64,000 nucleotides of DNA from Styela clava (taxonomy: Eukaryota). The notes beneath the pieces are model-generated. The model was not told where the DNA came from and searched no databases. It saw only the letters and a program-made list of their open reading frames with translations. How positions within the stretch are numbered: the stretch's first letter is position 1; every line of letters starts with the position of its first letter. The position numbers were made by a program, and so were the translations under genes. The stretch lies in NCBI RefSeq assembly GCF_964204865.1, contig NC_135250.1:25358001-25422000 (forward strand), in the 5' to 3' direction. Shown piece after piece: positions 1 through 60,056 of the stretch.

Positions 1-3000
1 CTTGTGTTTGCTTAGTTGGCGCAGGAAGAGCTTGTTCGTAACCGGCAGTTTCTTGTAGCACGTTCGAATATGATGGTTGAGAAACTGGGTCGTTGGAAGG
101 AGTTGCTGATTAATTAAAAAAAGTTCGATTAACGACTATAGGAGAAATATTAAATATCTTTAAAATATTGACGAAGAATTGGCGAACAGTGCAAGACATA
201 TCCAAATCATTTCTTATTTTTCATTGTCGTCACTCAAGAGCGAATTACACAATAAGGAAGAGTAAACGTTTGTATAATGACTAAACGATACAAAAATGAC
301 TAGCAAAATATTTGTCATCTTTTAGTAATTTGAGATGAGAATGATACCGGAGAAGACATACATATTTTACTTAGGCAAATTATCTTATCTTCCTGTTTAA
401 ATATTTTTGCATTGGTGATGAAAGGAAAGCTGGTGAATGTCCTGTATTTACTTATATTTCAGAATTTTCCGGTGGCTGATCAATAATAATGTATTTTACG
501 TGAAATGGTGATTTTCGGATCTCACTACCTTTTTCTTGTATATTTTCGTAATTATGTTCTTTCGCTTCTGCATGTTTCTTTAACTTTTTTATCTTATTTA
601 TCAGTCTGTATATGATTAAGCCAAAGATTACGTAGAAGATCAAAGGAATCAAAAAACCGATCACAAAACTGACGATGTTCAACTCAAACGATTTCTTTTC
701 TGAAAAATTATATAAGCTAAAAAAAAAACTTAAATATTAGAAATTTTTTATATAATATTGAAAGTTTTAACAAAATTGACGAAATTGACAATATTTTCAT
801 TTTAAAACCGAATAGTTGCATGAACATTATTCCTTATTCAAAAGAATAATTTTCTAAACAATATATATTTCAGTAAATGATTCCCAAACTTTTTTCATTT
901 TTTTGAAGTAAAGTGTCTGCAAAAATCATAATTCACTTTCATAAAGTTTCGATTGGAATCTTATATAGTTCTCGGAACATACTTAGTATCTAATTACTAT
1001 TTCCCTTGAACTATTTCCTGAAACTTAATACTGATTCAGGTTTGAGCCGGGATCATACATCAATATAATACATACGGTTTTCTAATATCGGCCCATTAAT
1101 AACAAAAAGAAATTTAATATAAAGGTATTCTCGCAACAAGAACTGAAAATCAATTTCCGAAAAATATACAGTTTTATTTAGATAATGCGCTAACCACTGT
1201 CCATGAATTCCATAGGAGTGAGTGAATTCTCAATGATTACGCCCAATTGAGTAGAACAAATCTAAATACTTGGAAATATAATAATTGAATTCAATTTATA
1301 CCTTTTGGTTTTCCCACACAAGAACCTATGACAGACCAATAGCAATTGAATATTTTGATCGAAGCAGAATAATTACGATTTGGTTCTGGTTGAAATGAAT
1401 ACCCGGATGATGTCGTCACTTCTATGAGCTTTGTGGCTACCTCCGAGTTTGCATCTAGCGAAGAAACTGGAGTTGAAGTTAGATTCAGTTCCTATAAATA
1501 ATCAGATAAAAAAAATTGCATCAGAAATATTGAAGTTTTTATTTTAAATTTCCTAAATATTGGTGTCAAATAAATTGTTGAAGATAACGCAATAAACCAA
1601 AACTTCCAGATAAGTGGAATATGATTTTGATATAAAATATTGATAAAACAATATCTGTCATTTATATCAGTGGACCAAAACAGATCTACGATCGTGAGCA
1701 ATAGAGTGGATGGCTGTAGAATCAGCCAAACTTCGTGACACAGAGTGAAGTCATATTACACGTAATAATTCTCAATACAATTTATACACCATCAACCAAG
1801 TTGTTGTAGGACATGTGTCTCAAATAGTTTGTGTTAACAATGCAATTATCGACTCACCACGATATAAGAATCACCAGTCTCTGTTTTGTTATATAAGATC
1901 CATGAGATGACGCAAGTTTGCGTATTCTTGTATTGTATAATAGATGACGATTCAACAGATAACTTTGATCCGCCTGTTCTTGCGCTTCGGATGGTAGAAT
2001 ATTGGGTTGGACAGTTATCCTTTGTTACACATGCAGTTATCTGAAATTTATATTAACAATATAATAAAGCAACATAAAATTTGGGTGAGGGGGTCAAGTA
2101 GCTTAGAACGTTTCGTACGTATTCCTGAGAGAGGAGACTTTTTGCCGGAAGTAGAACCCATGCAATAAAAATTAAAAAGAACTGATCATTTACGGTATAA
2201 TGAAACATTTTTACTTACTTTGATTTGAAAGGTTGTGGTAGGCGACAAATTGGTTATTGTGGTTGACTGTTTCTCAGGTGTTGGTGAATCCAACCATTTT
2301 GTTGATTCACCTGAGGTCGGACTTACTTCTATTCTGTGAAACAGATGTGAGTTGACAGTGACAAATTGATGCGAGTAAAACACCTTGTAACAATACACGT
2401 AATGGTGTTGGGTAGACGGGTCGTGACCAACATGATAGATTTACATGTTGACACTCACCAATACGTCTAATAAATTTACCATGGTAACTTATACAGCTCC
2501 AACCGTTTTCTTAGATGACATTATATCATTGTTGTGAAAACGAATATTGACTTAGATTTGTCTAACGACATTTTCGGTTCGGAGGAAGAGATGACGCATA
2601 AACAAGATGTTGAAATTTATGCCTAAATATTCATAAAGGTAAACTCACTTGTGTGGAAATCCAACAGCATTTGTATGCGGTTGCCATGAGATGATCAAGT
2701 TAGAGTTGCAGACGTTATTTGATATTTGTTGAATTGTGGGATTTCCAGCCACTGAAAGTAATGACCAAAAGATTAGTTAACATAGATTACAAAATTAAAG
2801 AACGTTATTTATATTCACCCTCATATGATTCAGTTGTATTTTTCTCGGTTTTGCCAATTCGATAACGACAACTATAAGATCCCGCATCTGCAATATTTGC
2901 GTTTTGAAGATTCAATATTGCTGATCCATTTTGTAACAATTGATAAACTCTACTTGTAGTTGCGGTTGATACTTTGTTAGATGATTTGTACCAATCAACT

Positions 3001-9304: not shown

Positions 9305-11252
9305 TTGCATATTTGTACTCGTTCACAAAAATTTGAAGACATCTGATGACGTACTTTCTTTGACTGACATGATAAAACTTAACGATAAAGTGGATGGAGA
9401 TGAATATATTGCTAAAGCAATATCTGTGAAAAGGTTAGAAGTATTTATTTTTTTTTTCAAGTATTCTACAAGGTTATTTGAGTTGATTATGTGATTTCAT
9501 GTAAATGATATTTGTCAAATTCAGGTGATGGATGTTATATATTGGGATATGAGATTTTGTTTGAACGTCATACCGAAATATATCATTGGAACTAAATGAA
9601 TTTGACTTTTCTATGCTACGCATATTTACGCCGTTCGCTTGAAAATCACATTTTTTGTCCGTGTGAACGCCATGCCATTGAATATTTTAGCATGAAGGGG
9701 AAGCGAATGAATATCACACTCGGTGAAGAATCGATGACAACATGTGATGTAATAAATATCGGAGAGTCAGGAATACAAAATGAACAATCTTCTGGAAAAG
9801 AAACTATATTAACGGGAAGAATTAGGAAACTAGATAAAGAGATCGTAATCTATACTTCTTCAAACACATGCTTTAATTGAAAGTTTTAGCATAAATGCAA
9901 TCAATACCTCTTAGTAGAGAAAAGATAAAGAAATTAAACATATTTTTTGACGCAAAATTAAATTTTTTACTTAATTCCTTCTTTAATATATAAATGTATA
10001 TAAGTATATTTTTTTAATTTATACTTTATCATTTTGTCATAATGTATAAGATAACTTATCTTGCTTCAGCATCTCAATCGTTTATTCGACGTCATCTGGC
10101 GACCAAATAATTTTCAAACAAAGTCCTTCAATCACTCTGAACAGCGCTGCTATAGATGATGAGGGTAAGGAAGACTATTCTATATTTCTGTGTAATAGAG
10201 AATTTTGGTCTAGGTCAATAGGTTGAGATAAAAAAAGAAGTGAGTTATCTCAGTGAGAATATAAGCCTAACCCGGTTTGGGTCCAACTCCAAGCAATGTT
10301 ACGAGAGAATACTTTTGAAAAATTTCCAGAAAAAGAAAACTTGACATGGAACATTGGCTCGAAGATGAAGTGTTATTTTATCGGAAGCACTTTTACTATC
10401 TTTTCGGATTTTTAAATATTGATCATGTGACTATTTTTAATGATTATGATTTTTTTCAATTTTATTAGTATTTTTGAAACCAAAGCTCTTCAAAATCATC
10501 TGGAATTAATGGTAATATTTTTTTTTAGAAAAACATTCATTCGAGTTCAACATCGCGAGTTTCGTGATCGGTTTTCTTATTCCTTTTGTCTTCTTGGTCG
10601 TCTCTGCCGGGATCATATACAAATTGAGGAAGAAAATAAAGAATCTGGAGAAAGATGCTGGAGAAAGAAGCAAATAAACACAATTACGAAACTATAAAAG
10701 GAAAAGGTACTTAGAATTAATGTTAATCAGAAAAGCATTATTCTTGTAGAAAATATTGTTCCTATATAACCAACTAGTTTTATGAATATTCAAAAAAATA
10801 TTAATAATTACTCATATTGTAAACACAACAGAATATGTTCGGGATCAAATTTGTATCTCCAATTTATTTATTATTACATAGAATGAATCTTAGTAAGATT
10901 TAAAAGTTTAGTAAGTTATTGATGTACAAATATTATAACCCGGCGATTTGCAATTTCAAAAAACCCCAAGAAAATTTGCATAATAAAACAAATGTAAATG
11001 TATTTCTGAGAGACATGTTCATCTTGAATTACTGAAATTTAAAATGGATTGGTCTAATATTAGCCCATTACACCAATATTATAAATCTTATTGGAATTTT
11101 TATTTAATTTGATTCTCAAGCAATTAGCAAATCCTTCCAACAACCAGTTGTATCCGAATGTACTGCAAGAAACTACCGAAAACAAACAAGCTTATTCTGC
11201 CACAACTATCCAAAGACATGGGGAATCAGCTTACGAAACTTACAACGCCTAA
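9305..11252 (+). pseudogene. 5'-truncated receptor fragment E (three of the four membrane-proximal-domain exons, TM exon, tail exon)
   Basis: Exons 9305-9433 (CIFVLVHKN..YIAKAI), 9691-~9845 (NITLGEESMTTC; normal donor deleted), 10070-10164, 10529-10706 (TM, +7 nt frameshift from a TGGAGAAAGA duplication) and 11128-11252 (LYPNV..AYETYNA*). The ten upstream exons are absent. Confidence 0.85.
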
Positions 11253-11591
11253 TAAACTCAATATCTATTCGCATATTATAAAAAGAAAAAAAGGTTGGTC
11301 TTCATAAAACACTCGGTGATGTTGTGACTAACAATGTCTTAGCTGTTGGTTAGAATATTTCAATCGTGATGGTGTCAATGGATAAAATTCTTACAAGTCG
11401 ACTCAATTATCAATCTCCATCCAATTTCTCTGAAGCTGATATGAATATACTAATATCATACGGCATGTATTCTCATTTTCAATTATGAAGAAAATTGACT
11501 TAAAATTAGCCACGTAGTAATTCGATGATATGCCCAAAATGCCCATCTTCCGTCGGCCAGGGTTTTTCTATTGATATGGATGTCTTAATCT

Positions 11592-11810
11592 GGTGCTCTC
11601 GAAATTTGCGTACCAAGATGGCGTACACCGGAACGTAGTATGTGTACCGCATGTGTAATTTTATTCCAATTTTCCATATTTTAGTTCTATTACGAGTTCG
11701 AGGACTAGCCAAGTGACTACCGTAGTATTTGTATCTGAAATTAAGGCTTAACCCTAACCTGGTACATATACTACGTTCCGGTGACCGCCATCTTGGTTCA
11801 CATACTTCCC
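11592..11810. mobile_element. Palindromic MITE with long imperfect TIRs (family also at 59845-60056; related ends at 39395-39602 and 51838-52225)
   Basis: GTACCAAGATGGCG..CACCGGAACGTAGTATGTGTACC ... GGTACATATACTACGTTCCGGTG..CGCCATCTTGGTTC inverted pair. Confidence 0.7.
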
Positions 11811-12239
11811 TTAATCTTACAAAACGTCACTAGACATTTTCAAATCACTTGATTATTTAAGTGAGTATTTAGCGAAACCACGTGATACCTATTTTTATTG
11901 TTCATTGCATATTCACTCGTCTTTGTTATTTCGTTTTTATTTTATTTTATTTTTTATTATATCTGAGGGTGTTGTTAGCTCCATAGCTAAACAATCCGTC
12001 ATTCTCAACTCATAATATTTAAACATTTATCGTAACAACTTCGTCAATTCGTGATTTTTTGTTTAATAGATCCATTAATTCTGATTCTTAATATGAAAAA
12101 TCATCATTCAATTCTGAACCTTCGCTGACGCTGCAAATATCCCTATTATGTAAATCATTCTCGTACTTTTACTGGAAAAAGCAAATGTGACTTATTACGT
12201 TGATGTTATTTCCTTGGCTTATTACTTTAACTTATTATG

Positions 12240-12407
12240 CAGAGTGTCCATAAAGTCCCTTTACAATTTCAATTTTTGTTATGAAGCCAGTTTATATCTT
12301 AAGTATTTTTACTTCATTTAATACATCTGTGAGGGCCAAAATAAAGTGGGGCATCGGTAAATTTCCTCTTGCAATTTTAAAAATGTCAAGACCTTATGGA
12401 CACCCTA
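12240..12407. mobile_element. Small Tc1/mariner-like MITE (also 60521-60688)
   Basis: TIRs CAGAGTGTCCATAAAGTC / GACCTTATGGACACCCTA, followed by TA. Confidence 0.6.
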
Positions 12408-12429
12408 TATAATGAGTCAAAAATCAAAG

Positions 12430-13197
12430 GAATTTTCAAAGCTCACAAGTTTAAATATTTAAACAAATATATAGCCTACTTGTACAAAAACTGTTTTATA
12501 CATAATTGATTTTATAGTAATTATTAGCTATTATCAGTTAACCTGCCTGCGGATTATACTAGCAATATTCTTTATAGGCTATCTGGTTTTATCAACATTT
12601 TTTAATAGTACTTTGCTTTATCACGCAAAGGCTATTATGTTATTTTAATACGTCTATAGTCTCAACTTTTTAGTCAGTACTCTTCACGATGTACACTAAG
12701 GCTCTGGTCTTTACTTCAAAATAAAAAAAATGATAAGGTTTATATATTCTAAGCATATATATAAGGTGATGAAAACACCATTCATATTAGTGAAACGACC
12801 TAGCTAGAGAGGGACATTGGAAATGGCAGGATGGTACTGATGTGATAATGATAGGTGAAGTTGAATATTAATATATACCAACCAACCAAATTATTCTCTA
12901 AAAAGTCAAAGTATATACATACTGCATTTCTAAAAATGAGGTAGATTTTAGCTTAAGATAGTTCATCCAATTGGTGACTAGTACTTAACAAGTAATCCAA
13001 AAGAAGGAATTCCCCTACGACAGACAATGGCATTATTGAAGTCTCGCTTGCCGTTGAATTTGCTACACTCTTGTGGATACTACACGACATGAAAGTTATA
13101 AAAAATAATTTAAGGAGCAATTTTTTTTTTTTTCAATTTTTTTAAATATAGTTGAGGACCAAATCAGTTTTGATATCTTACTTCACCTCTCATCATT
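12430..13197. pseudogene. Decayed receptor intron-2/CTLD exon-3 remnant, with an inverted piece of the exon end at ~13157-13197 (duplicated at ~61270-62020)
   Basis: + strand TGGAAATGGCAGGATGGTACTGATGTGATAATG (WKWQDGTDVIM) with frameshifts; - strand ATGAGAGGTGAAGTAAGATATCAAAACTG (MRGEVRYQN). Confidence 0.7.
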
Positions 13198-16100
13198 TAA
13201 AATTCAAATTTATAAATACGAGAAAATTGTTTGCCGATCAATAATGGAATGGGTTCAATATGCTCAATTCTAACTTTCGTACCGCCAATGATCAAGAATT
13301 GATTTTTTGCTGAGTTGCATTCTAGTCGGAACTGGTGTTGAGGAGTGACAACGGTACTGCTGTACTGGCTTGTTCACGTTTTAACCTGTGGTGCAGTGCA
13401 AGCTTAGCAATCGCCGTTGTAATACTTAGCAAGATAGGTAGTAATTCATTCCAAAAGCATAAAGTTAAACTGTGGATAAGTACGCCGAACAATCGCCGAG
13501 TGCATAATGAAACAATTCGCTGGCATTGAATGAATACCAATAAGGAGCCTACATATGATGTAAAGATGAAAAGGACGTTAAGGCAGCATGACAGAATCGA
13601 AATATAATGAATCAGGTTTATGAAGAAAAGTAATTGAAATTCAACTAACGCAGATAGGCCTACAGTAAAAGTTTTTATCGGTACTGCAAAATCTATCTAT
13701 ATATTGAATGACAACTCAAACAATATCTTTGGTATTATATATGCATAAACAGTTTTATGGTCCTACAATTTGACCATGCCAATTCGCAACATTTTTACCA
13801 TTTTTTTAATGGCGTGTTATTGTTTTGTTCTGTGTGCATATCGTTTTAAGAATATCGGTATTGGCCTCATCAATTACAGACCTGTACACTCGTGATTGGT
13901 GTGTTTCCTGTGAATTGCTTTTACAAGTGTCTGTGCACATAATTTACCAACATAGCTTCGATTAAAGTTTGTATTTTGCTTCTTTTAAACCAATGCCAAA
14001 TCAGTTAAGTTATTCGTGGCTTCCGACTATTCTCGTTAGTCGTTACTTTGTCACATTGTATTTGTATCAGATTGAATAGATCATTATCAGCTTAAGTATT
14101 TTAAAAGTAGCCTACAACAGCCTGAACGTTCAATACATTCGCGTATTTTTTGCGTGTTTATTTCTGGCCCATTCCTCGTTTAACAAAGTTTGTGTTTTTT
14201 GTTAGTGACTTGATCAAGCTACCAAGAATTGGACCAGTCCCGCCATCTATATCATCGGAAATGAAAAACTCAGTCTGATACCGGCATCAAATCTCAACAA
14301 CACCTCTGTAACACAACATAACAGCTATTTAAGTAAACATTGTTCACAGGTTGGGGGAATAGCTATATTTTGGATTGAGATTTCATGCGCAAATATTGCA
14401 CTATCTCGTCCATTACTATCAGGTGAAGAAACATTTATATAATATTTACAACGTTGCTAGTTATTTGCGTCAAATCGGAAATCACTGTTATTCACGAAAC
14501 CACAAGCTTCTTATGTCTTTTGGTTACTGCATGTCGAAACTGTACAAACAGTAGTGACACCTCGTAAAATGATTATTATAAGTTCACACCCACAATTCAT
14601 TGAGTCACTTTTGTACATAATACATGCATTGCTAAACCAACCGTATTTAATCTGTATATACACATTTAATATTAAATGTCAAAATCATATTGTTGAGCAA
14701 TATAATGAACAAATATAAATTTAATGCAGAGCAGAAATAAAATATATTTTAGTTTCATAAAAGATAATGTGTGAGATTTTTAAGATTGTTGTGAAACAAG
14801 TTTGCCAAATATTGTTTATCTGTCATTTTCCTTTTTCCACGTATATTTACAAATATTTGAAAGATCACATATACAGCACATGGAAGTTTTACACGACCCT
14901 GCTCAAATTTTGCTATATCACTTAAAACAGTTTTCATTCGGTGTAACTTATAAATAGCGAAATGCTTGTGCATGTCACATGTTTCCTGATTGCAGTAGAC
15001 AGTGAAAATATTTTCACATTTAAACGCTCAAACATTCATCCATCTGAATAGAGAAGACTTTTTAGTATATCAAGACTTAATTTCCATATAAACTTCTCTG
15101 AGTATACGTTCTTTAGAAAAGTTTGCAATATTTAAGTTTTTAACTTTATTTAATTACACATGGCCAACTTCCCGGAAATTTGGAATAAGTAACAAACTCA
15201 AATCTGCATTTGCGATCTTTTCAACTGCTTACTCTATTTATACTTCTTGAAAACGTATATATTTGTCTCAGTCACAAGTATTTCTAAGCACAATAATGTT
15301 CTTCACTGGAAATTAGAGGTATCGGTGCTGGATGTTCAAGTGATATTAACTTTTGCTCGTTCTAATACGATTATAATAATAGGTCTGTACAAATAAAGCA
15401 GCAACATTTACAAATTACAACAAAGAAAAATCAACAAAGTAAACAAAATGTCGCAGTAATGTGAAACACTGTTTAATGTCAAAATTTTCTTTTCTGAGAA
15501 AATACAATGAAAATTTAGAAACTTACAAAGGACTGATAGATCATCATCGAGTCAGCGATACCCCAATTAGTTAAAATGCGAAACAAAAATGTCAAGTGAA
15601 AATGCAAAAAACAATAGAATTAAACACCACATGGTTCTAGCTTGAGGCATTTGCAGGACCTGGTAAATAAAAATCTCTAGCCTCAACTGGTGACGATTTG
15701 CAAAATTACAGACAGGCGCATCACGTACCAGGGGAAATCCCATGTCCGATGAAATGCGTGCATTTCAGACATAACATCCAATTACTATAAGAATAACGGA
15801 CTATTTTTAGTCGAAAGAAGCATTCTTTCATTTTTGTCTTCTATTTTTAGTCAACAAGAAGAATTCTTTCATTGTTGGAAATGACACTATAAAACTTTCC
15901 TATTTTATAGTATATGCGTATTAGTTGTCGGGCATGGAAATTATAACGAGCGAGACAAAATGAGTGAACTTTTCAAGTAAGGTTTTTGATTTTTATTGCT
16001 GTATTATAATACACAGACTACACCCGAACTACAAGTCGTTTACAAGAATGCATGCTAGAATATACATGTTTGCGACATGACCTACAGAGCTGATTACACT

Positions 16101-16304: not shown

Positions 16305-19300
16305 TCAGGCGTTGTAAGATTCGTAAGCTGTTTCCAATTGTGTTTGCTTAGTTGTCGCAGGCAGAGCTTGTTCGTAACCGGCAGTTTCTTGCAAGACATT
16401 TGATGATGATGGTTGTTTGTAAGCTAATTCTACTTGCGTTTGCTTAGTTGTCGCAGGCAGAGCTTGTTCGTAACCGGCAGTTTCTTGCAGGGCATTTGAT
16501 GATGATGGTTGTTCGTAAGCTGATTCCACTTGTGTTTGCTTAGTTGTAGCAGGAAGTGGTTGGTCGTATCCGGCAGTTTCTTGCAAGACATTTGAATATG
16601 ATGGTTGTGAAGCTGGATTGTTGGGAGGAGTTGCTAATTAATTGAAAGAATGTAATTAGCAACAAACAAAAATCGATTTAAAAGACTGATCTTGTAGAAA
16701 TCAGATCTAAGTAAACCTGTGGTAGACAGTGTGTTAAAATAATAATTTTTTAAATAAAATATCTCAGTTTTTTTCTATTACTTCATAGAAGGTTTGTTCA
16801 CAGACCAATCTCTTTCAAATTTTTAGTAATTTAATGGGCGTGACTCCTAGTAGGGCTTTAATTTTATTCACTTTTTATTTGCGGTGGCATTCCAATTTTG
16901 TATAAACTCGAGATATACAAATTGTATTGCCCCACTATTAGAACCTGTATTGATTGATAAACGTTTTCTATCCCATTAACATTGATGGCATGTGTTTATC
17001 ATTGAAGTGGAGTTAAAACTTTTATCGTGACCGTATTCTGTTGTGTTTATACACTTTGAATGACACTTCGAATTTGATTTTATGGGAATAATATTTTATA
17101 CATCAGTTCTGATTATTTCTCACTACCTTTTTCTTCTATAGTTTCGTAATTATGTTCTTTTACTTCTGCCTTTTCCTTCAAATTCATTATTTCTTTCTTC
17201 AATTTGTATATGATCCAGACAGAGACGACCAAGAAGACGAAAGGAATGAGAAAACCAATCACAAAACTGATGATGTTGAACCCGAACGCTTCTTTTTCTA
17301 AAACAAATACGTTACTCTGATTTCCCGTTGATATTTAAAGGTTTTGGGATTATAGTTTTATTAAAATTAGCAACATCATCTCTAGAATTACAAAGATAGT
17401 ATATAACGTTCACAATAAAAGAACACTTTATTCTTCTTTCAATTCTCAAAACTATTTGCTTGTTATCTTGTGTTGTTTGAAGTTTGCTAATTTTTTCCAT
17501 AATCTGGCTTTGAATTAACCAAATCTGAATATTTGTTATTCTTACCGGTATCGTTCTTAGCAGTAGTTTCCTGTTCACCTTGTTTCAACGTTATAGAGGG
17601 GCTTTGACTGAAATGTATTTGGTCACCAGAGGGCGTAGAATAAACTATCGAGACACTGAAGTAAAATAAGTTATATTATGCATTGCGGAAATAAATTCAT
17701 TAAATGAAATACTGATAAAAGATCCGATATATTATATTTGATTTGATAGCACTATTGAATAGGTAAATCAATCTAATTTGACGTTAACATATATCTTTAC
17801 TTTCTGTCGGTTTTAAAATAGCATTATAACAATACCAAAACTTTCGATTAAAAATTAAAAGTCTATGATGATCTATATATCCCTAAGATATATCTGGAAT
17901 ACCTGAACGTCTTTTTATCTAATTTTTTGTTTCTTCCTGTGAATAAAATTTCTTTTCCACGACTTTGTTCATTTTGTATCCCTGCTTTTCCGGTATTTAT
18001 TACGTCACATGTAGTCATTGATTCTTCACCGAGTGTAATATTCATTCTCTCCCAATTCATGCTAAAATATTTTATTCAATGTAAAATAGAATATGGTATG
18101 TTATGCAGGAAATACCGCTGCTACTCGAGACAATAGAAAAATGACGTTGCAACGACGCATACAAGTATATACAAATTGAAACTCTTAATATAGCAGTATA
18201 TATGAATTCAAAATACATGAAGGGTGCGGTGGTACGCACATACGCGGTATCAAAGTATCTTGTTGCATGTGCTTTGTATATATTATAGCCAAAAATTATT
18301 GGAGTAAAGTATTAGTAGTACAATGTGTTTCGTTACGGTCGTTAGAAAATTCAACGTCAAAAATCTTATAAACTCTACAACAAATAATCGCTGTTGTCCT
18401 GATATATTACATAATACATCCACTAGCTAGACGTAAAATCACGTTAACCGGGTAATCTAATTAAATGTTACTTTTTAATTGGCTTTGTCGGATTAGCAAC
18501 CAGAAATAGCAAATGAAACAAATCACCCTAGTACTTCTTACGAGTGGGACTTTCACCCGATCTATTAATTTTAATTTTACAAATAGAATTTTAAGTTGTT
18601 TATCTTATAAATCGTATTTTTTGTTTATAAATCCTGTTCAACTGAAAACACCCAATTGACAGATCACGTAGAATATTCTTCTGGAAAAAACGATTTCCAA
18701 CCTTGTCATAGGTATTGCTTTAGCAATATATTCATCTCCGCTCACTGTGTTGTTAATATTTATCATGTCAGTCATAGAAAAGTCGTCGTCAAGTTCCTTC
18801 AAATTTGTGTGTACAAGTACAAATATGCAACTGAGGTAAATAAATTATACAATATTAAAAGTTGTACTGATAGCACTATTTGTTGAGGAATGAATTCCGT
18901 ATTGTGGAATGATATTGATCAAAATAAATCAAAACTTCAGTGTCTAGTAAGCAAAGTGACTGTATTGGTGAGAGAGATGCTTAATATACCTAATATGATA
19001 TATGAACATGCTCGGTCGATTTTTATTCCAGGCTAACTATCAACCGTAGAGAAACAGACGTATTAACTTTTTGAATACCGATATATATATTATTTTCTAC
19101 TCTGTTGCATTTAGCTTACCTGACAAGGCCATTAGTCTCATCCGGTGCCTGTATTGCCAGTTCTTTGATGCCACACACGTTGATTAGGTTATCTTCAAAA
19201 CTTTCAGGCGGAAAAATCTTTGTAGGAGCTAAAACACGAGACAGTGTTTGCTAAAATAAATTGCGACAAACATGCTTACGCATTTTCACATATATTGGTT

Positions 19301-22300
19301 TGAATGGAGTTGTTAAGTAGACGGGTAATTGCAAACTTGATTTCACAAATATTAACTTCTCAATATACCTGTAGGTTTTCCTAGACAAGTGCCAGCAACC
19401 AATAATTCTTGACCAAGACCAGCACACTTAAATATTTTGATCGAAACAGAATAGTTACGATTTGGTTCTGGTTGAAATGAATACACGGATGATGATGTCA
19501 CGTTTATTAGTTTCATGTCTGTCTTCAAGTTCAAATCTCGCGACGAAGCCAGGGTTGAAGTTAAATTCAGTTCCTATAAATCATCAGATAAAAGTATTGC
19601 ATCAGAAATATTGAAGTTTTTATTTTAAATTTCCTGAATATGGGTTTCAAATGAATTGTTGAAGATAACGTAATAAACCAAAACTTCCAGATAAGTGGAA
19701 TATGATTTTGATATAAAAAATTGATAAAACAATATCTGTCATTTATATCAGTGGACCAAAACAGATTTACGATCGTAACAATAGAGTGGATGGCTGTAGA
19801 ATCAGCCAAACTTCGTGACACAGAGTGAAGTCATATTACACGTATAAATTCTCAATCCAATTTACACACCATCAACCAAGTTGTTGTAGGACATGTGTCT
19901 CAAATAGTTTGTGTTAACAATGCAATTATCGACTCACCACGGTATAAGAATCACCAGTCTCTGTTTTGTTATATAAGATCCATGAGATGACGCAAGTTTG
20001 CGTATTCTTGTATTGTATAATAGATGACGATTCAACAGATAACTTTGATCCGCCTGTTCTTGCGCTTCGGATGGTAGAATATTTGGTTGGACAGTTATCC
20101 TTTGTTACACATGCAGTTATCTGAAATTTATATTTAACAATATAATAAAGCAACGTATAATTTGGGTGAAGTGGTCAAGTAGCTTAGAACGTTTCGTACG
20201 TATTCCTGAGAGAGGAGACCTTTTGCTGGAAGTAGAACCCATGCAATAAAAATTATAAAAAAAATGATCGTTTACGATATATTGAAAAATTATTACTTAC
20301 TTTGATTTGAAAGGTTGTGTTAGGTGACAAACTGGTTATAGTGGTTGACTGTTTCTCAGATGTTGGTGAATCCACCCATCTTGTTGATTCACCTGAGGTC
20401 GGACTTACTTCTATTCTGTGAAACAGATGTGAGTTGACAGTGACAATTTGATGGAAGTAAAACAACTTGTAACAATATGCGTAATGGTGTTGGGTACACG
20501 GGTCGTAACCAACATGATAGAAATACATGTTGACACTCACCAATACGTCTAATAAATTTAACATCGTAACTTAAGCAGCTTCTACCGTTATTGGACACGT
20601 TTAGTGGCCATAACGATCGTTTCAAAATTTTGTTGTTATTGTTTAATGTTATTTGTCTCCGTCTCCATTTTTAAAAAATCGCTTTTCTCTTCGAATACTG
20701 GACCAATTGCTTTAATATTTTCAGTGGTTAAGATAAAATTTTTCTCCAGAAGGCTATTACTTTTCTTTCGCTATGACGTCATCAAAATTATTGCCACTGG
20801 GTGGCGCTACGTGTCCATATATTTGAGCATAGCTCTCTTGTCTTAGATGACATTATATCATTGTTGTGAAAACGACTATTGACTTAGATTTGTCTAAAGG
20901 CATTTTCGGTTCGGAGGAAGAGATGACGCATAAACAAGATGTTGAAATTTATGCCTTAATATTCATAAAGGTAAACTCACTTGTGTGGGAATCCAACAGC
21001 ATTTGTATGTGGTTGCCATGAGATGATCAAGTTAGAGTTGCAGACGTTATTGGATATTTGATGGATTGTGGGATTTCCAGCCACTAGAAAAGTAAATACC
21101 AAAAAATTAGCTGACAGAACTTTCAAAATTTAGAGAAGATCGTTATTTAAATTCACCCTCATATGATTCAGTTGTAGTTTTCTCGGTTTGGCCAATTCGA
21201 TAACGACAACTATAAGATCCCGCATCTGCAATATTCGAATTTTGAAGATTCAATGTTGCTGATCCAGTTTGTATCGTTTGGTAAACTCTACTTGTAGTTG
21301 CGGTTGATACTTTGTTAGATGCTTTGTACCAATCAACTTGTGTTGCAGTGCTGCATTCTGTCGCAGAACATCTTTTCTGGTTTCCACTGATTGTTTGTAT
21401 TCTAACGAACGGGCCCGGAAACACTGAAGCAGAATTTGTGAATTTGAAGCCGTAAATAACACAAATTAGTTTAAAATATGAAAACTAGGTTGATTACTTT
21501 GGTTCATGCAGGCAGAAACACTAAACTTTGAAAGTATCATGATTATATTTTTAGCGGATAAAAGCATTTTTGCGTTGATACTATTAGGGCAACTCTGTTT
21601 GTTACAAAATTTAAATTAAGTGATAGAAGCGCAATAATTCTACTATAGGCATTCAGTGGCACCGAAAGACAATACTCTCGTATCGTATACGGTACTTGTA
21701 TTGATGTGACCTGTATTGAACAGTTTCAATAGAATATTGTTAATTTGACATTTACTTCAAATCATATTTATCGTGCTAGCTTATAGGACAGGAGTTTATA
21801 TATTTGAGTTTCGTTGAGGGCAGTGCGGGTATTGTTACTGTAGTGTTCTGGGTACCATAGCATTTCCACAGTTCAAGCTTCTTTCATGATATCGTATGAT
21901 TTTTGTGGAATTGTTGGAATAGCTTTGATTTCTATATACATATATTTGTGTTTTGCTCTATTGTTTTCTTTAGATAGAACCTATGCAACTTGATACGTTT
22001 CCTTTACCTTCAGTTGAGCAAGCTTGCATATTCAAACCACTTGTACGATACCAGAAAAATTTACGACAAAGCTAAAAAACCCATAAGAATGTCATTATGA
22101 GGACGAGTTATACAAGTCTGTTATCAAAACATAGCCATATAATGAATTCATTGAATAATGAAACATCAATGATACCTATCTTTCAAATTGAGCCAAAAAT
22201 AGAAAACCGAGTATTACCTTTCTGGCAAATGTAGAAGAAGTTTTCATCGCAAGATGAATCAACCCACAGGTACGTTTGTCTGCCAACTGTCAGACAGTTT

Positions 22301-25202
22301 TCACCAGTCCCACCATTTGGCTGATTACCTTTCCTGATAAATTGAGAAGCCGTATTATTTAAGTGTAAAATTTATGCGCTTCCTAAGCAATGGCCATACA
22401 GTCTTCAACAGCATTATTAACTGCAGTCTCACCATTCGGTTGATTATATTTCCTGATAAATTGACAAGCCTAATTAATTAAGTCTAAAAATTAGGAAGGC
22501 TCTGATGAACTAATCTGAACCAAATTTGTTAACAAGATGTTGCGCAGATATGGCTACCCATTATCTATAAATAGGAGAAGTACTGATATAATAAATATGA
22601 AATTAAAATAAATTTTGGCTTGGCATAATTTATCTCATTTCCCTTACTGTTATCATCTAATAAGGTTTGTCAGCATTTCACCACTAAAAAAATGAATTCA
22701 ACTACGGCAGTTAATGAATATCATCATTGAAGTCATGCCGAGGTATTTCTCTTTACTATAATATTGATAATAATTAAACTGCATGGTATACGAGATCAAA
22801 ATTCTAATTCGCTCCTTAAATAATTTTATTTTTTTCATTTTATTTTTGCAACTTTTTTAAATAAACTTGAAAAACAAACCAGTTTTGATATCCTGCTTCT
22901 CCTCTCATTGTCACATCAGTACCATCCTGCCATTTCCAATCTCTTTCTCTAGCTATGTCATTTGCTCCGATGTAAAAGGTGTTATCTTGATGTTGTATGC
23001 TAAGAATATAAAAACCTTATTAGTTTTTTTTTAAGAAAATACCGGAGCCATCAATTGAAAATTAATAAACGACTGAGGGAAGAGCTGAAATATACCACGG
23101 AACGCTAAGATAGCTAAATATCCTTTGTGTGATGAAGCAAAGTAGTAATTAAAAAACGTTGATTATGCCAGGTAGTCAACAGTTAGTTCTGGTGTTTTGT
23201 AAACTTGAATGTATATGTCTAATTAGTAATTACTGAAAAAACTCATTGCGTATAACAATTTTCGTTCAAGTTTATTCAAATATAGTAACTTGTAAGCTAT
23301 GAAAATTTCATTGATTCTTGCTTTTATTCTATTTACGAATAACTACTGGCTTCAATACAGCATATCCAAGGTAAATAAATTGCTGTGTGGAAATTAACAT
23401 AAATACTGCGGCTGGTTTTACGATTATAATGTGAAAATAATGAAGTACATATTTGGAATTATCCCGATCCTACAACATGATTCCTAAAAGTAAAATAAAT
23501 CTTTAGCTCTCGTACATCACTGTACAAACAATATCCTATTTCAACTCACGTATATAATAAGTGTTTAATCTACATCAAGGCTGCCCAACCCGCGGCCCGC
23601 GGTCCGCATGAGGCCCGCCAGACTGTTTTTCGCGGCCCGCCCTATAAAGTTTGTAAGCAGAATTTTTATGTTTGTACTATGTTATTCAATTTATAGGGTT
23701 AAGTAGGTTTCGTGATTTTGGAGTGATTATTCCTGCCATCTATCCACATTCAAATGCCGGTTTTTATTATTTTGTATGTGTCAAGTCTTGCACCCTGGTA
23801 GACATCGACGTCATTTTTTTTTATTTCTCGCAGAACTGAGCGTTCTGTTCGACGGACTCGAAAGATATTGTGCAATCATTGAGGACGAACGCTGAGCACA
23901 ATTATGGGAATGAATTTTGAGCCTAAATTTGCAGATTAATTTCATTCTGATTGATTTCTTACGTGTCTGCTTTGATCGTCTTTATCTCCAACGTAACATA
24001 AAAAGTCAACGATATCTTTGGTACTGGTTCTGGGAACGTTGTCCTTTTATGTTTGTGATTTTTTTTTCAAATGTTTGGGTTAAATAAGATTTCGGAAATG
24101 TCGTCACTACGTATCCGTCAATAATTCTAATGAAATTGACTTAATGGCATTGCTGCATATTGGCCACGAATCAGTATATATATAGGAAATTCGTCCAGAA
24201 ATCTTTGTAATGTTACTTCATTAAATATTTGCATTGGCGTTCCAAATTTTACAAAACGACCGATTAAAACTTGATATTTCTGCGACATTGGCACACATTA
24301 TGCTCATTTAAACATTGAGGCAGTATCATAGCTACTGAAAATGAATGAATAAAAATACTATAACGCAAATATAACATTTAATTTCGACGTGATGTGTGTG
24401 TTTTCGGGTGTCATCAAGAAAGTTTCATGCCCACGCCCCGTGTTACCAGATATTCGAATAATTTGCCAGCCCTGCTTAGTAAACAGAAAGCAATTTTTAA
24501 CTTGATTGATTTGATCTTAATAAGCTTGACTTTTATGTATTACATAAATTACCTACACCGAAATCAGGACCTATAGCTGGTATTAATGTTTGGTACAAAC
24601 GTTTGCGGCCCGCAACGAATTTCGACTCTTGAAAGTGGCCCACGAGACGAAAAAGGTTGGGCAGGCCTGATCTACATTGAGATGGTACAATGTTCAATAC
24701 ATAGAACAATTCACATATTAAATAACACCAAGATATCAAAAATAAGTTTCTTTCTAACTCACTCGAATGCTGAATTAATGACTGTCGTTATTCTTTGATC
24801 ATCAACTTTAGTCAAGTAACCTCCAAATCCTTCACAAGAAGATTTTGCCTCGTTGTAAGTTTTACGTTGTTTGAAAAAAAGCAGTTCAAACCCATCAACA
24901 CATTCTTTCTTCCAGGGATCTGAAACACAACGGTATCTGGAATTGTAATCAGATTCAAATTTCAACAATTGAATAAATAACAATTCTCATTTATTACCAT
25001 GAAATTTGAAGAATATGAGCTGAGGTTTTTCCATATATTATAGAAACATTTGCATTTGTCCGAGAGAAAGCAACCTATTCATAAACAAAATGTTGGACAG
25101 GAAAAAAGCAAATGGGTTTTTTCATACAATATTCAACTAACCTTGGGCTGAAGCACTTGTGATGATAATCGAGACAATTATCACCAAAACAGTAGGATTC
25201 AT
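16305..25202 (-). CDS. Receptor copy B: CTLD(QPN)-Ig-FN3-FN3-RPTP-like membrane-proximal domain-TM-tail with 3x32-aa Tyr repeats; 15 exons, 766 aa
   Basis: Exons 25202-25142, 24919-24763, 22999-22880, 22333-22218, 21423-21157, 21083-20981, 20415-20301, 20120-19938, 19573-19369, 19228-19120, 18830-18702, 18061-17903, 17655-17579, 17297-17127, 16633-16305. All GT-AG with matching phases; total 2301 nt, single terminal TGA. Confidence 0.9.
16321..16608 (-). repeat. Coding minisatellite, 3 x 96 bp, encoding QPS(Y/S)SN(V/A)LQETAGY(D/E)Q(P/A)LPATTKQTQ(V/L)E(S/L/T)AY(E/K)
   Basis: T(C/T)GTAAGCT recurs at 16321, 16417 and 16513 (period 96). Confidence 0.95.
20591..20841 (-). mobile_element. Non-autonomous Helentron/HINE-like element (AACAAGAGAGC..ATATATGGACAC family)
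   Basis: Absent from the paralogous intron of copy A (empty site CCGTTTTCTTAG near 2505). Inserted in a T-run without a TSD; subterminal GGACAC/GTGTCC inverted repeat. Confidence 0.55.
22389..22452 (-). pseudogene. Orphan truncated duplicate of CTLD exon 4 inside intron 3 of copy B
   Basis: ATCAG|GAAATATAATCAACCGAATGGTGAG.. gives (W)KYNQPNGETAVNNAVEDCMAI, then fuses to intron sequence (GCT TAG stop). It matches the copy-D-type exon. Confidence 0.85.
23576..24669. mobile_element. Non-autonomous hAT element (~1.1 kb) in intron 2 of copy B
   Basis: TIRs CAAGGCTGCCCAACC / GGTTGGGCAGGCCTG; 8-bp TSD ATCTACAT at 23568-23575 and 24670-24677; empty site in copy A at 4983-4990. Confidence 0.92.
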
Positions 25203-41863: not shown

Positions 41864-44800
41864 TTAGGCGTTGTAAGTTTCATAAGCTGTTTCCATTTGT
41901 GCTTGCTTTGTTGTCGCAGGAAGAGCTTCTTCGTAACAGGTAGTTTCTTGTAGCACATTTGAATATGGTGGTTTGAAAGCTGGGTCGTTGTGAGGAGTTG
42001 CTATATAAGTTTAAAAAAATGTTTAATTGAAAAATTCCAATTTGATTTAATTTGAATAATTGATAAGAAATAAAATTTATGTATACAAATGGCGCGTAGG
42101 TAGATTCTTTCAACTGTTTCATAATCTTTATTTTCTGGACTTGGAAAAAAATACAAACAATGTGAAGAATAACGTTTGTATAGAGACTTTCTGTACTACT
42201 GGACTGAAATACCGAACCATTCTCTGTCATATTTTAGCAATATAATATGATCACGACCCCGAAAATGGCATTTAATTTATATGTTTTAGACAATTATTCC
42301 CATGCTCTTCCAAATTTGTTTATATGTATGTCCACACATTTTGTCATTGCCAAAGGAAAAAATAACTGGAGAATATCAAATTTACTTATTTACAGTTAAA
42401 AATGATCAATGGGTTGATCAGAACTATTTTTGTATAAAACGGAGATTTTTAAATCTGCATTAATTCTCAGTACCTTTTACTTGTATAGTTTCGTAATTAT
42501 GTTCTTTCGTTTTAGCATTTTTCTTCAAAATCTTTATCTTCTTCATCAGTTTGTATATGATTAAGGCAAACACTACGTAGAAGGTCAAAGGAATTAGAAA
42601 ACCGATCATAAAACTGATGATGTTGAATTCGAACGGTTTCTTTTCTAAAAAATTACATTATTTTAACAAAAACTCAAAATTAAAGTATTCCCCTATATTA
42701 TTAAAGGTTTTAACAAGCATAAATCATCGCTTGTTGAGGGAAATGACATAATCATCATTTCTAAAATGAACATTTGAATGACATTAATCCCGAATTGAAA
42801 GAATAGTTTTCTGAACAATATATATTATAGTGCATGATTCCCAAACTTTTATTTTTTATTTTTGAAGAATATGTTTCACATCAGCTGGAGTCTGCTACAA
42901 TCATAAGTCACTGTCCTAAAGTTTTGATTGGAAAATTATATAGTTCTCAAAACATAATCATTTAGTTTCCTTTTCCCTTGAAATATTTCCTGAAACTTAA
43001 TACCGATTAAGGTTTTAGACGAAATCATTAATACAGTATGGTTTATACAGTTCTTTTAATATCGGTCAATTAAAACCAAAGAAAACGTATCAGAAAATTC
43101 TAACATCTCGGCCCATAAACGAGAATTAGAACCTAATTTACCAAAATCTCTACAATTCCAGTTCCTCATAAATTTCATTTGAGTGATTGAATTCTCAATC
43201 ATCACTTCCAATTTAGTTTGATAAGGATAAAAATTTGAAGGCGTAATTAGTGAATCCAATTTATACCTGTTGGATTTCCCACACAAGTACCTTTGACCAG
43301 CCAAACGCAGTTGAATATTTTCATCGTAGCGGAATAGTTACGATTTGGTTCTGGCTGAAATAAATACCAGGACGATGACGTCACGTTTATTAGTTTCGTG
43401 TCCGTCTTCACGTTTAAATTACGAGAGGAAACCGGGGTTGAAGTTAGATTCAGTACCTATAAATCAACAGATAAAAATTTGCCTCGTGAATACTCATGTT
43501 GTTGTACCGACTTCTGCAATATATATTCGTTATATTCTTCCCTGAAAATGCCTTGTTGGTGGATAAAAAAAGATCTTAAAGCTAGTGCAAACGACCCAAA
43601 TTTCAACTTGATATGAATCAAATATAAAATACAGTATTGTAAAATCTATACATCATATTCGTTGACAAAGACAGATAGAAATACGTTCGTTAGTAATTGT
43701 GTGGCTTTGTGATAAGTCAGAATTTCACGGTACGGATAATTTCTAAATTCAAATTACATATACATTTAGCCCAATCTTTGAGGAAAAGTGTTTCGTCATT
43801 CATGAATGCAACAAGTGACTTACCACAGTATATGAATCACCACTCTCTGTCTTGTTAGATAAGATCCAAGAGATGACGCAAGTTTGCATATTTTGGTACT
43901 GAGTAATAGATGACGATTCAACAGATAAACTTACTCCCCCTGTTGTAGCACTTTGGGTGGTGGAATATTTGGTTGTGCAATTATCTTTTGTTACACATGC
44001 AGTTATCTGACAAGAAGGGATTTATGAATACATTGAACTCAATCGGACATCAGCTAAGCGACACAAAAAAATTAGCGGCAAAAGCAAGATAAGGAAATGC
44101 ACCGAATAAAGGGGCGAAAGATTTAACGCAGCAACAATACCAATAAAAACATTAGGTATGTATTCACTATGAGCACTATTTCAAACATAAACTGTCGGAT
44201 CCGGATTTTACGCTTGATAGTGAAAATATGAGTGTTCAAAAGAGCAAACCCTGCTTCAAACGTTAGAGTGATTCGAATAGAGACACATTCTGCCAAAATA
44301 GTCGCACAGAATAGGTGCGGAAAAAATTAATAGGTTTGTGAACAATATGATGAAATATTTAATATTGCTTACTTTGATTTGATAGGTTGTGGTGGGCGAC
44401 AAACTGGTTATTGTTGTTGACTGTTTCTCAGATGTTTGTGAATCCACCCATCTTATTGAACCACCAGAGGTCGGATTTACTTCTATTCTGTAAAACCGAA
44501 GTGAGTTTACACTGACATTAATGCAGGAAACGAGTAAATAATAATCATCCATGTAGCCCATTTTCTCTTTGGGTGAATAGTTGTAGATGTGCATGAAGAA
44601 TCATCGGACCTTTATATAATTTAGACAATTTGCTTCTACGCTGTTTAACATTATGTATGACTGGTATCGGTGTATCGGGTTGTGACCAGAGTGCTGAACT
44701 CACTCGCGCTGACGGTGCAGAATGACGAATCGGGTTCAATCCTCATATCAACATTTTACTAATAGAGGTGATAATTATGAAAAAGCAAACGGAGCAGCTC

Positions 44801-49300: not shown

Positions 49301-49989
49301 TTAGTAAGCTGATTCCCCTTGTGTTTAGGTAGCTTTGGTAGAACAAGCTTCTTCGTTTCCTGTAGTTTTTTGCATCACATTCGAATATAATGGGTTGTTG
49401 GAAGGAGTTGCTAATTGGTTGAAAAACAAATTTAAACAATTCCAATTAGATTTAATATATTGGTGTAATGGACTAATATCGAACCAATCCTATTTTAAAT
49501 TTTAGTAATTTAAGATGGACATGTCTCTCAGATGGGCATTCACATTTATTTCATTATGAAAATTTTCTTGGGGCTTTTCAAATTTGCAAATCTCCGTGTC
49601 CTTATATTTATACATCAATAACCTACTAAACTTTTTAAATCTCACTAAAGTTCATTTCATGGTATTATAAATAAATTGAAGATACAAATTTGATTGCGAC
49701 CATATGTTGTTGTAATTACAATATGAATATTTATTTATTTTCTTGAGTAGTCATAAAACTATTTGGTTATATAGGAACAATATTTTATCCAGGGAATAAT
49801 GCTTTTCTGAAAAACAATTATTCTAAGTACCTTTTTCTTTTATAGTCTCGTGATTGTGTTTTTTTGCTTCCACATATTTTTCTTGATTATTTATTTTATT
49901 CATCAATTTGTATATGATCCAGGCAGGGACTAGCAGAAAGATCAAAGGAATAAGAAAACCGATCACGAAACTGATGACGTTGACTTTTT
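49301..49989 (-). pseudogene. Orphan TM + tail fragment F of the receptor family
   Basis: TM exon 49989-49831 is open (NVISFVIGFLIPLIFLLVPAWII..HNHETI). Tail exon 49410-49301 has a premature TAA. No ectodomain exons upstream. Confidence 0.82.
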
Positions 49990-51837
49990 CTAAAAAAACA
50001 TATTACTCTGAATTCCAGATTATCTTGAAGCGCTTTGAGTCCAATAAATATTGATAAAATTGGCAAAAATCATATTCTTCAAAAATGGTCGCTGATCATT
50101 ATTTTCAAATCCGAAAAGATAGTGAAGGAGGCGAGCGTATTCCTAACACTCAGCCCGATGAGTCACACCGCCGCGTTCCTCTAATTTACAACAAAATTAT
50201 CAATTTCGATAACTTACTAACGCTACAAATATTTTTATTATGTATTTATCATGTTCATAAATATAAACCCTCTCTCCTTTTGTAATTGAGGAAACATTGT
50301 CATTAAAAAGAATGCATCGCATTCACTTGTCAATTTTTGATATTGTTAGATTTTACGCTTCCTGCTATACGATATTTGTCATATCTAACCTCGGGATTGA
50401 AGAATACGACAAATGAAAAAGTTTCTTGAAGTTTGTTGATAATGGCGTAATTTCTTTTTGAATTTATTGTTGTCAATCTTTTGATGACAGGAGACTATTT
50501 GTTCAACAGAAAGTTGACTTAGAAGAAAAATGTTTTAATCCATAATTACTTTTTGACATTTTTTTTATATCTATTCCAGTATTTTTATCATTCGATTTGT
50601 TAATTGCAGCGAATTATTTATCGAGATATCATCTGAATACAAGTAAAACTGTTTTTTTTTTTTTTAATTGGGACAAAACTGGCTCAACGGCAATATTAAC
50701 TGGCGTTAATCATTTAAATGAATTTTCAGGGTCAGTTGCAGAAAAGGACAATCACTATATGTCCTGATTTGTTTGCAAACGAACATTTATGTAATAAAAA
50801 ATAAATGTGTGACTGAGTGTAGCTCTATATAACAAAACAAATTTCTTACATTTAATATACGTAGTATTTAATCCATTCATTAATTTTTTTTTTCATAACG
50901 AAACTATTAATTCTCTAATTATTTAATCACAATTTATCATGCAGTTTTTCCAAATTTAAAAAAGTTAAAAATAATCAGACCGAAATATTAGATTCGAAAC
51001 ATTCTGATTTGAAATTTGATTCAAAAATGAAATATTCGAAAATTACATCCCTATCTTTGTTCATGAGATCTGCTTTGCAACATCCAAGAGATGAGCTTGT
51101 GAGAAATGATCCGAGATTAAATTCTAAAAAATCCAAACACGTACAAAAAAGTATCAACATATGCTATTCATTGTAAGTACACGGTTCTTAGTTTTCTTTG
51201 TGATAAATATCAGTCATTCAGAAATTAAATGTACAGGACAAGGGACCGTTATCGCGTGGTATATTGCCCCCAATCGTCTTCGACTGTGTATAGATTCAGA
51301 CAGAAGTTCTTTTTTACTTCATTTATTATTTAACACACCAATTCCTTCTTATGGTATTGCTTTTGGAATAATATTAAAAATTTTGAATCGTCAACAATAT
51401 GCTTCATTCTCTAACATTATCGTTTTATATACGGAATACAGTTGATTTGGTATTGTATAACTATTGTGCAAAATTAATCAACGTAATTGTGGGTGTAAAA
51501 GCAGGATATTATATTGGTATTAATTCGTAGTTAATATTGTGAGTTGTCCAAGCTGAGCAGTTGAGGAAAAATTACAATTACAATTGAAGCCGGGTTTTAA
51601 ATTTTCGGTTCGACACCAGTTCCGGACTCGAAGGAAGAAATTATATTTTGAAAACTTCATCGTATACAAGCCTACGTCAATACAATGTTAAGAACAATTA
51701 TGACCTAAATGTGTTTTTGGTTTTCAAAGAAAAATCAGTTTCTATTTGAAATTCCGACTCCAGGGAATTAGAAAGTTGAACTCCGGATTCTGACAGTTCA
51801 ATAATACGATTTAACACTCAAGCTACTCAACGTTGGG

Positions 51838-59844: not shown

Positions 59845-60056
59845 GGTTCTCTCGAAGTTTGCGTACCAAGATGGCGGACACCGGAACGTAGTATGTGTAC
59901 CGCATGTGTAATTTTATTCCAATTTTCCATATTTTAGTTCTATTACGAGTTCGAGGACTAGCCAAGTGACTACCGTAGTATTTGTATCTAAAATTAAGGC
60001 TTAACTCTAACCTGTTACATATACTACGTTCCAGTGACCGCCATCTTGGTTCACAT
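59845..60056. mobile_element. Palindromic MITE (duplicate of 11592-11810)
   Basis: Same TIR pair. Confidence 0.7.

Follow-up and report, generated by a model that had tools for sequence, protein, structure and literature searches.

Introduction

The number of ITAM (immunoreceptor tyrosine-based activation motif) modules, compared between CD3-zeta and FcR-gamma, scales signal amplification (PMC4428620). In the CagA protein of Helicobacter pylori, an increase from one to two EPIYA-C units of 34 residues raises SHP2 binding more than 100-fold (PMC4623810). Here we analyse a tandem tyrosine repeat in the ascidian Styela clava, located in a stretch of 64,000 nucleotides (RefSeq assembly GCF_964204865.1, contig NC_135250.1, positions 25,358,001 to 25,422,000), hereafter the window. 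The last two exons of S. clava LOC120335142, which we refer to as copy B, lie at window 16305-17297 on the minus strand, and the last of them contains three in-frame 96-bp units encoding conserved tyrosines. We conclude that the copy B repeat is real, conserved and in-frame, and that it resides in a previously undescribed ascidian receptor family.

This family shares features with several described systems. As in CD3-zeta and FcR-gamma (three versus one), the tandem tyrosine modules of its disordered cytoplasmic tails vary in number from one paralog to another; unlike in CD3-zeta and FcR-gamma, the S. clava modules are not ITAMs and are situated on the ligand-binding receptor itself instead of a separate signalling chain. 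Among documented precedents for an effect of copy number, CagA comes closest. Its EPIYA-C segment is likewise a tandem coding repeat of ~32-34 residues with a tyrosine, located in a disordered region and mostly present in 1-3 copies, although up to 6 occur, and its duplication gives a non-linear gain in the binding of a tandem-SH2 protein (PMC4623810). However, CagA is an injected bacterial effector whose variation is allelic between strains, whereas the S. clava variation is among paralogs. In the p130Cas substrate domain and in LAT-type scaffolds, repeated YxxP or YxN motifs in a disordered region recruit Crk/Nck or Grb2. These have no homology to the S. clava tail, in which YxxP occurs mainly at junction tyrosines and YxN once per tail. 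A further comparison is human DRD4, whose repeat is Pro-rich and of the SH3 type. This 48-bp variable number tandem repeat in exon 3 is also a coding minisatellite in the cytoplasmic part of a receptor (PMC3164202); DRD4 is highly polymorphic in populations, whereas the S. clava motifs are tyrosines and the variation is seen among paralogs.

A comparison within the same ascidian family comes from Botryllus, whose enlarged receptor families bear several tyrosine motifs in the tail, YxxI/L/V among them, and which expresses homologs of Src, Syk, SHP-1, Grb2 and Crk (PMC12582321). Like the S. clava genes, the fester co-receptors (FcoR) of Botryllus schlosseri are from the Styelidae, form large, clustered and fast-evolving families, and bear several tail tyrosine motifs (PMC12582321). 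The S. clava motifs YETI and YSNV fit the FcoR 'core-1' pattern YxxI/L/V, and FcoR proteins have a C-terminal motif pair 29-33 residues apart (PMC12582321). FcoR proteins are Ig-only and some possess a canonical ITIM (immunoreceptor tyrosine-based inhibitory motif) or hemITAM, whereas in the S. clava family the head is of the lectin type and neither motif occurs; the two are likened here by their features. Ascidian genomes are reported to lack LAT and SLP-76 (PMC12582321).

Results

The copy B tail exon contains three in-frame 96-bp units

Tandem Repeats Finder located the array at 16320-16608, with a period of 96 bp, 3.0 copies, 88% matches, no indels and a score of 466. This period equals 32 codons, and across the exon a single frame stays open, which on the minus strand translates as ATPPNNPAS-[QPSYSNVLQETAGYDQPLPATTKQTQVESAYE][QPSSSNALQETAGYEQALPATTKQTQVELAYK][QPSSSNVLQETAGYEQALPATTKQTQLETAYE]-SYNA*. 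Unit 1 (16512..16607) is the sole copy B unit that retains the YSNV tyrosine. Unit 2 (16416..16511) is identical to unit 1 at 82/96 nt, and unit 3 (16320..16415), identical to unit 2 at 88/96 nt, is followed by SYNA and the stop (16319-16305). Mutually, the units are 85-92% identical. An earlier note on this DNA had described three 96-bp units, and the repeat finder, the open frame and the RefSeq model all agree with it. The nine tail tyrosines that it listed (YETI, YSNV, YDQP, YEQP, YEQA, YKQP, YEQA, YESY, YNA) are all present, the YSNV tyrosine does read Ser in the translation of units 2 and 3, and the unit junctions do form YxQP motifs, as YEQP or YKQP.

With head-to-tail, in-frame units in the size range of about 10-100 bp, the array has the form of a coding minisatellite. 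The note's use of that term holds for three in-frame units of 96 bp but is not supported in the sense of a hypervariable array, given the identity between units and the positional signatures common to paralogs. Among the short unitigs in which four public read runs are stored, none showed a 96- or 192-bp skip at the array, which unitigs of this kind could not size. A lone unitig joint from 16547 to 16805 (257 bp) was set aside; it is no multiple of the 96-bp unit and probably mixes paralogs.

The exon structure agrees with a public gene model. RefSeq model XP_077968785.1 (P0026; 777 aa) is labelled "uncharacterized protein LOC120335142 [Styela clava]", and its tail and transmembrane (TM) region match copy B at every residue. 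The TM exon (17127..17297, minus strand) encodes ...EKEAFGFNIISFVIGFLIPFVFLVVSVWIIYKLKKEIMNLKEKAEVKEHNYETIEEK, identical in P0026, in which a hydrophobic segment is followed by KLKKEIMNLKEKAEVKEHNYETIEEK; by translation, YETI lies at 17148-17137. Between the TM and tail exons is a phase-1 intron (16634..17126, minus strand) bounded by GT at 17126-17125 and AG at 16635-16634. Splicing yields the codon G|CA for Ala and the join EEK|ATPP (...EEK-A-TPPNNPAS...), as in P0026. The tail exon (16305..16633, minus strand; locus L001, 100% identity) includes the stop codon at 16305-16307 and provides 108 complete codons, which with the splice-spanning Ala codon give 109 residues.

Pfam detected Lectin_C (6.6e-18), I-set (5e-05) and fn3 (7.8e-05) in the whole public model P0026, which also has an N-terminal hydrophobic leader, a single TM segment and a C-terminal tail, all expected of a type I C-type lectin receptor. 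At the exon level in copy B, Lectin_C falls on three exons, I-set is confined to one (3.9e-06) and fn3 matches a further one weakly, while on the tail exon Pfam gave nothing meaningful. The protein tyrosine phosphatase (PTP) domain (PF00102) is absent from copy B, which is therefore not a receptor protein tyrosine phosphatase. The product of LOC120335142 is thus a type I receptor in which a C-type lectin domain is combined with Ig and FN3 domains.

Unit number differs across a large tandem family

To place copy B in its family, the whole S. clava assembly was searched in six frames with the tail exon as query, and matches were then fetched and translated. There were 47 matches, most on the contig of the window at 24.85-25.63 Mb, and the genome contains at least 44 tail exons. 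Tails with three units were found at 14 loci, 3 of which have a stop or truncation, and tails with two units at 8 loci, 1 of which has a stop. One-unit tails comprise 11 close loci and about 11 diverged ones, located on the same contig and three others. No exon longer than 111 codons occurred among the tail-exon matches in this assembly, and the only four-unit tail, P0052 (XP_039258528.1), comes from an older S. clava annotation. We conclude that copy B is one of more than 40 type I receptor genes clustered in tandem on one chromosome and laid out as signal peptide, C-type lectin domain, Ig, FN3, TM and tail. Nor are three units peculiar to copy B: the repeat, with 1 to 4 units, is a trait of the family as a whole. 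The earlier claim that paralogs differ in unit number is thereby extended to one, two and three units here and four in the older annotation, with repeated changes.

Matches in protein databases were confined to this species. The real phmmer matches to the tail exon were the S. clava proteins P0001, P0005 and P0018 only; bacterial TPR proteins in the same list were discarded as noise, having matched via YEEALEAY-like strings. A word search with P0001 likewise returned S. clava paralogs only. One weak phmmer match, P0011 (191 aa), has its own tandem repeat of ~36 residues with two tyrosines (GGADQTGGYEVTIPYTAENTNMTQ), and may be another repeated tyrosine tail on an unrelated protein.

Several further features of the paralogs were observed. 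Within each of three sets of loci (L002, L003 and L004; L011 and L012; L021 and L022), copies separated by 30-160 kb of one contig have tails and flanks that differ little or not at all; they stem either from very recent segmental duplication or from haplotypes assembled twice. Two loci, L010 (C1:25537085-25537411) and L016 (C1:25512060-25512290), have Ser in place of the YSNV tyrosine even in the first unit (NNSAPQPSSSNV), so their tails are without any YxN site; P0051, their counterpart in the older annotation, retains this tyrosine. Old and new locus identifiers proved unreliable as a proxy for alleles, as the old LOC120335142 (P0045) has another paralog's tail. In the RefSeq isoforms X2 of two paralogs (P0046, P0050), the acceptor lies 21 nt within the tail exon and seven residues are lost; in P0046, TPSNNPA is dropped to give the join ...EK-ASQPSYSNV. 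These isoforms hint at transcript support for the P0046 and P0050 paralogs.

Unit number is inherited and occasionally changes by in-register exchange

In a tree of 67 units, grouping was by position (first, middle, last) and not by gene, with 6 positional label changes observed against 34.8 expected under shuffling. Because units group by position, the expansions are older than most of the gene duplications and repeat number is inherited. A second tree was built from the 1.5-kb flanks of 32 copies, with the repeat removed. This tree requires at least 7 unit-number changes; its well-supported branches alone force four to five, and supported contractions from three to two units occur at L015, L016 and L021/L022. 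Exchange between paralogs, as opposed to change within a locus, may account for some of them.

Hybrid units were found in two tails. Unit 1 of the two-unit L015 joins a unit-1 head (Tyr4) to a unit-2 body (A17, T21, K24), and unit 2 of the four-unit P0052 joins a unit-2 head (L2, S4) to a unit-1 body (P17, K21). They look like the two reciprocal kinds of product that a single in-register unequal exchange involving units 1 and 2 would yield. Together, the hybrid units and the flank tree reveal the in-register copy-number change, by unequal exchange or slippage, that is characteristic of a minisatellite. Unit number is an inherited, occasionally changing trait of the family.

The tail and its tyrosines are conserved

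Across ten intact three-unit genes, dN/dS (summed Nei-Gojobori) was 0.16 for unit 1, 0.32 for unit 2 and 0.31 for unit 3. Whole tails gave 0.29-0.61. Between deep lineages (e.g. L001 vs L011), the tail coding sequence is 87-89% identical, while the upstream intron is unalignable and the 3' flank is ~72% identical, a contrast to which gene conversion limited to the exon could contribute. These comparisons indicate that all units are kept by purifying selection. Tyr14 is invariant in 67/67 units and Tyr31 is kept in 65/67, and every added unit brings these two conserved tyrosines (columns 14 and 31), 15-17 residues apart, with a 32-residue period.

The 15 diverged tails share the conserved string YSNxL..E...YEQ..P.T..Q...E.AYE.YN. 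In them, the four Tyr columns have a mean conservation of 0.88 versus 0.68 for other columns (column permutation p about 0.02, the sequences being non-independent), and N at +2 (YxN) is retained in 93%. Beside the membrane, YETI is kept in almost all paralogs.

The tail is a predicted disordered region with recurring tyrosine motifs

AlphaFold2 run on P0026 (with an alignment of 15 paralogs) gave the ectodomain beta-rich modules and placed a helix at 612-662; residues 655-777 have a pLDDT of 24-32 and no secondary structure. The low pLDDT, taken with the leader at the N-terminus and the Lys-rich residues that follow the TM segment, makes the tail a predicted disordered cytoplasmic region, which is the usual setting for short linear motifs. 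The family tail is laid out as YETI, one to four 32-residue modules with the motifs G-Y-E-Q-A/P and A-Y-E, and a Y-N-A end; a third tyrosine (YSNV) occurs in the first module only. YETI resembles the Src-SH2 optimum pYEEI.

These motifs do not fall into the standard immunoreceptor classes. The ITAM consensus (YxxL/I - x6-8 - YxxL/I) is not matched: in YSNV-LQETAG-YEQA/P the spacing fits, as the earlier note had it, and the +3 residues, V and A/P, are non-canonical as it also said. ITIM and immunoreceptor tyrosine-based switch motif (ITSM) patterns ([S/I/V/L]xYxx[I/V/L] or TxYxx[V/I]) are excluded at position -2, which is H in HNYETI and P in QPSYSNV. For a hemITAM ([D/E][D/E][D/E]xYxxL), no tail offers a YxxL or a triacidic stretch. 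As a pattern match only, the Grb2-type pY-x-N is present as YSNV in unit 1 and as YENV in diverged paralogs. The junction tyrosines are YEQP or YKQP in all multi-unit tails, whereas YEQP or YDQP stands at Y14 in only 7/67 units, plus several diverged paralogs, the rest having YEQA or YEQV. The SH2 assignments made earlier (YxN to Grb2, YxxP to Crk/Nck/Abl) are pattern matches only; they can be read at YSNV and at the junctions, and most Y14 sites are YEQA and not YxxP.

The same kind of head occurs beside phosphatase exons

At least 38 matches to SH2 exons were found in the S. clava genome. PTP-domain exons at 24.80-25.17 and 26.29-26.37 Mb lie interspersed among the cluster's genes for one-unit tails; in the multi-unit part of the cluster (25.24-25.63 Mb) none was found among the 150 of 319 candidates that were scored. 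Outside the window, P0044 (G000:C1:25161350-25184330) has a lectin-Ig-FN3 head on the minus strand, running from 25,184,330 down to 25,170,628, and directly downstream PTP exons at 25,168,587-25,161,350 adjoin this head. The same kind of head is thus coupled either to a phosphatase or to a tyrosine tail. A further form, P0005 (XP_039252865; L030, G000:C16:12750351-12750482), is a 122-aa protein with a signal peptide, a TM segment with YETI and a one-unit tail, but without an ectodomain. The language-model clusters nearest to it, which serve as a lead only, are the small vertebrate transmembrane immune adaptors DAP12, DAP10, SCIMP, LST1 and GAPT, with scores of 0.79-0.82.

Other features of the window

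The window is AT-rich DNA without any N. The upstream exons of copy B (17298..24986, minus strand) encode lectin, Ig, FN3-like and membrane-proximal domains; by exon-level Pfam, the C-type lectin domain occupies three exons at about 24762-22186 and the Ig domain 21146-21484, both on the minus strand. In the lectin exon at 22186-22371 (minus strand), as well as in paralogs, the sugar-site motifs read QPN and WVD versus the usual EPN/QPD and WND, so Ca-dependent sugar binding may be altered.

Other copies of the TM and tail exons flank copy B. The tail exon of copy A begins in the window at 1..109 (minus strand), with its remainder beyond the window start; an open frame with the TM exon lies at 455..736 (minus strand), and there YENI replaces YETI. 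The complete exon (L011, G000:C1:25357780-25358106; protein P0025) contains three units, which corrects the earlier count of at least one. Copy C has its TM exon in an open frame with YETI at 42463..42657 and its tail exon, an open frame with a stop, at 41864..42010 (both minus strand); its single unit and 5 tyrosines, as first described, were recovered by translation, with the tail reading ...PPYSNVLQETTCYEEALPATTKQAQMETAYETYNA. Fragments E and F were said to have one degenerate unit apiece, and they do. In fragment E (plus strand), a TM exon without YETI (10516..10674) precedes a tail exon (11085..11249) whose one unit has lost the second tyrosine; in fragment F (minus strand), the TM exon, identified by translation, is at 49826..50002 and the tail exon, with a truncated unit, at 49328..49489. 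An E/F-type tail (NPLYS[NT]VLQETTGNEQAYS...) also occurs in the annotated 536-aa protein P0034 and at loci L040 and L041. Because the annotated P0034 has the same type, E/F-type tails represent a subfamily with Asn for the second tyrosine, and not necessarily decay.

A partial copy of the TM exon was also detected at 59433-59515 (plus strand), 77% identical over 83 nt, with no adjoining tail exon found. Window segments 11406-15247 and 59659-63956 have a translated identity of 80-100% in several frames. By this measure they appear to be a recent segmental duplication, mostly non-genic, beside fragment E and the TM fragment at 59.4 kb.

Discussion

We tentatively propose, with confidence a little short of even, that the tail is a phosphotyrosine docking string whose valency would be set by unit number; this number is altered by unequal exchange, and the units are kept by selection. 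For the copy B repeat, the earlier suggestion that it tunes signalling valency is plausible. In such a mechanism, clustering of receptors by ligand would lead a Src-type kinase to phosphorylate the tail tyrosines, on which SH2 adaptors could then dock. Each added module would supply two more docking sites at the 32-residue period, and extra modules might raise avidity or permit two-handed binding by tandem-SH2 proteins. Phosphatase paralogs with the same head would oppose the signal from the tyrosine tail.

Several points weigh against this proposal. Sequence constraint on the units is no proof that their number matters, and the low synonymous divergence of the tail exon could partly reflect gene conversion and not selection. 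YEQA, present at most Y14 sites, corresponds to no textbook SH2 motif, and YSNV would fit Csk- or SHP-type preferences equally as well as Grb2-type ones. The four-unit tail of P0052 could belong to a paralog absent from this assembly and not to an allele. Searched by phmmer against 1.84 billion representatives, the tail exon has no relatives outside S. clava. Finally, the short unitigs of the four public runs cover the intron of copy B as well as its exons, and no splice joint at copy B was found among them.

The number of units might instead be a neutral length variant: a disordered tail would gain or lose 32-residue modules by unequal exchange without effect on output, the sequence being kept either because the motifs of one copy matter or because gene conversion homogenises the exon. 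Such a variant would readily accommodate the many unit-number changes among the 32 copies, which have no obvious link to ectodomain class, and the near-identical distant tails (L002, L003, L004; L011, L012), which together with low dS fit conversion or recent duplication. We nevertheless regard it as unlikely, given that the middle and last units have a dN/dS of about 0.3 with nearly invariant tyrosines, that eleven intact three-unit genes persist, and that position-specific signatures survive across lineages whose introns have diverged past alignment. That the three units are an artefact of assembly deserves hardly any credence: tandem repeats are indeed prone to mis-assembly and the unitigs could not size the array, but there are 14 separate three-unit loci with locus-specific substitutions, and multi-unit tails also appear in proteins of the older annotation.

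Two other explanations assign the tyrosines a different partner. Many type I C-type lectin receptors are endocytic, and YETI and YSNV could be YxxPhi motifs for clathrin adaptors, with the repeated part as a spacer. Both motifs fit Yxx(I/L/V), and YETI is adjacent to the membrane in almost all paralogs. However, the amplified units contain no YxxPhi, with Ser for the YSNV tyrosine and remaining tyrosines in YEQA or YEQP, yet they are conserved; and because the same head occurs on a tyrosine phosphatase, phosphotyrosine signalling is pointed to over sorting, which we consider rather improbable. It is very improbable that YSNV-x6-YEQA acts as an ITAM that recruits a Syk-type tandem-SH2 kinase. 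The tyrosine spacing of 10 residues equals that of an ITAM and ascidians reportedly possess kinases of the Syk family (PMC12582321), but neither +3 position has L or I. Moreover, since later units have Ser for the first tyrosine, leaving one pair per tail, the repeat would not multiply ITAMs.

A more inclusive version of the docking proposal would combine these elements: the module as a built-in adaptor scaffold in a lineage lacking LAT and SLP-76; its copy number (1-4) as a heritable gain control that is segregating (3 vs 4); the receptors paired with same-head phosphatases; and the 122-aa form as a free TM adaptor. Taken jointly, these statements are distinctly improbable.

Ascidians, among living animals the nearest relatives of vertebrates, have large germline receptor families whose signalling is little understood. 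The S. clava family forms a natural series in which receptors that are otherwise similar have one, two, three or four two-tyrosine modules; the recombination products behind the series are still visible, and same-head phosphatase paralogs lie nearby. Should the module be no dock, the family would still illustrate clearly how unequal exchange acts inside an exon while a gene family is young. If it is a phosphotyrosine dock, the family would provide a ready-made test of motif valency versus signal gain outside the vertebrate ITAM systems.

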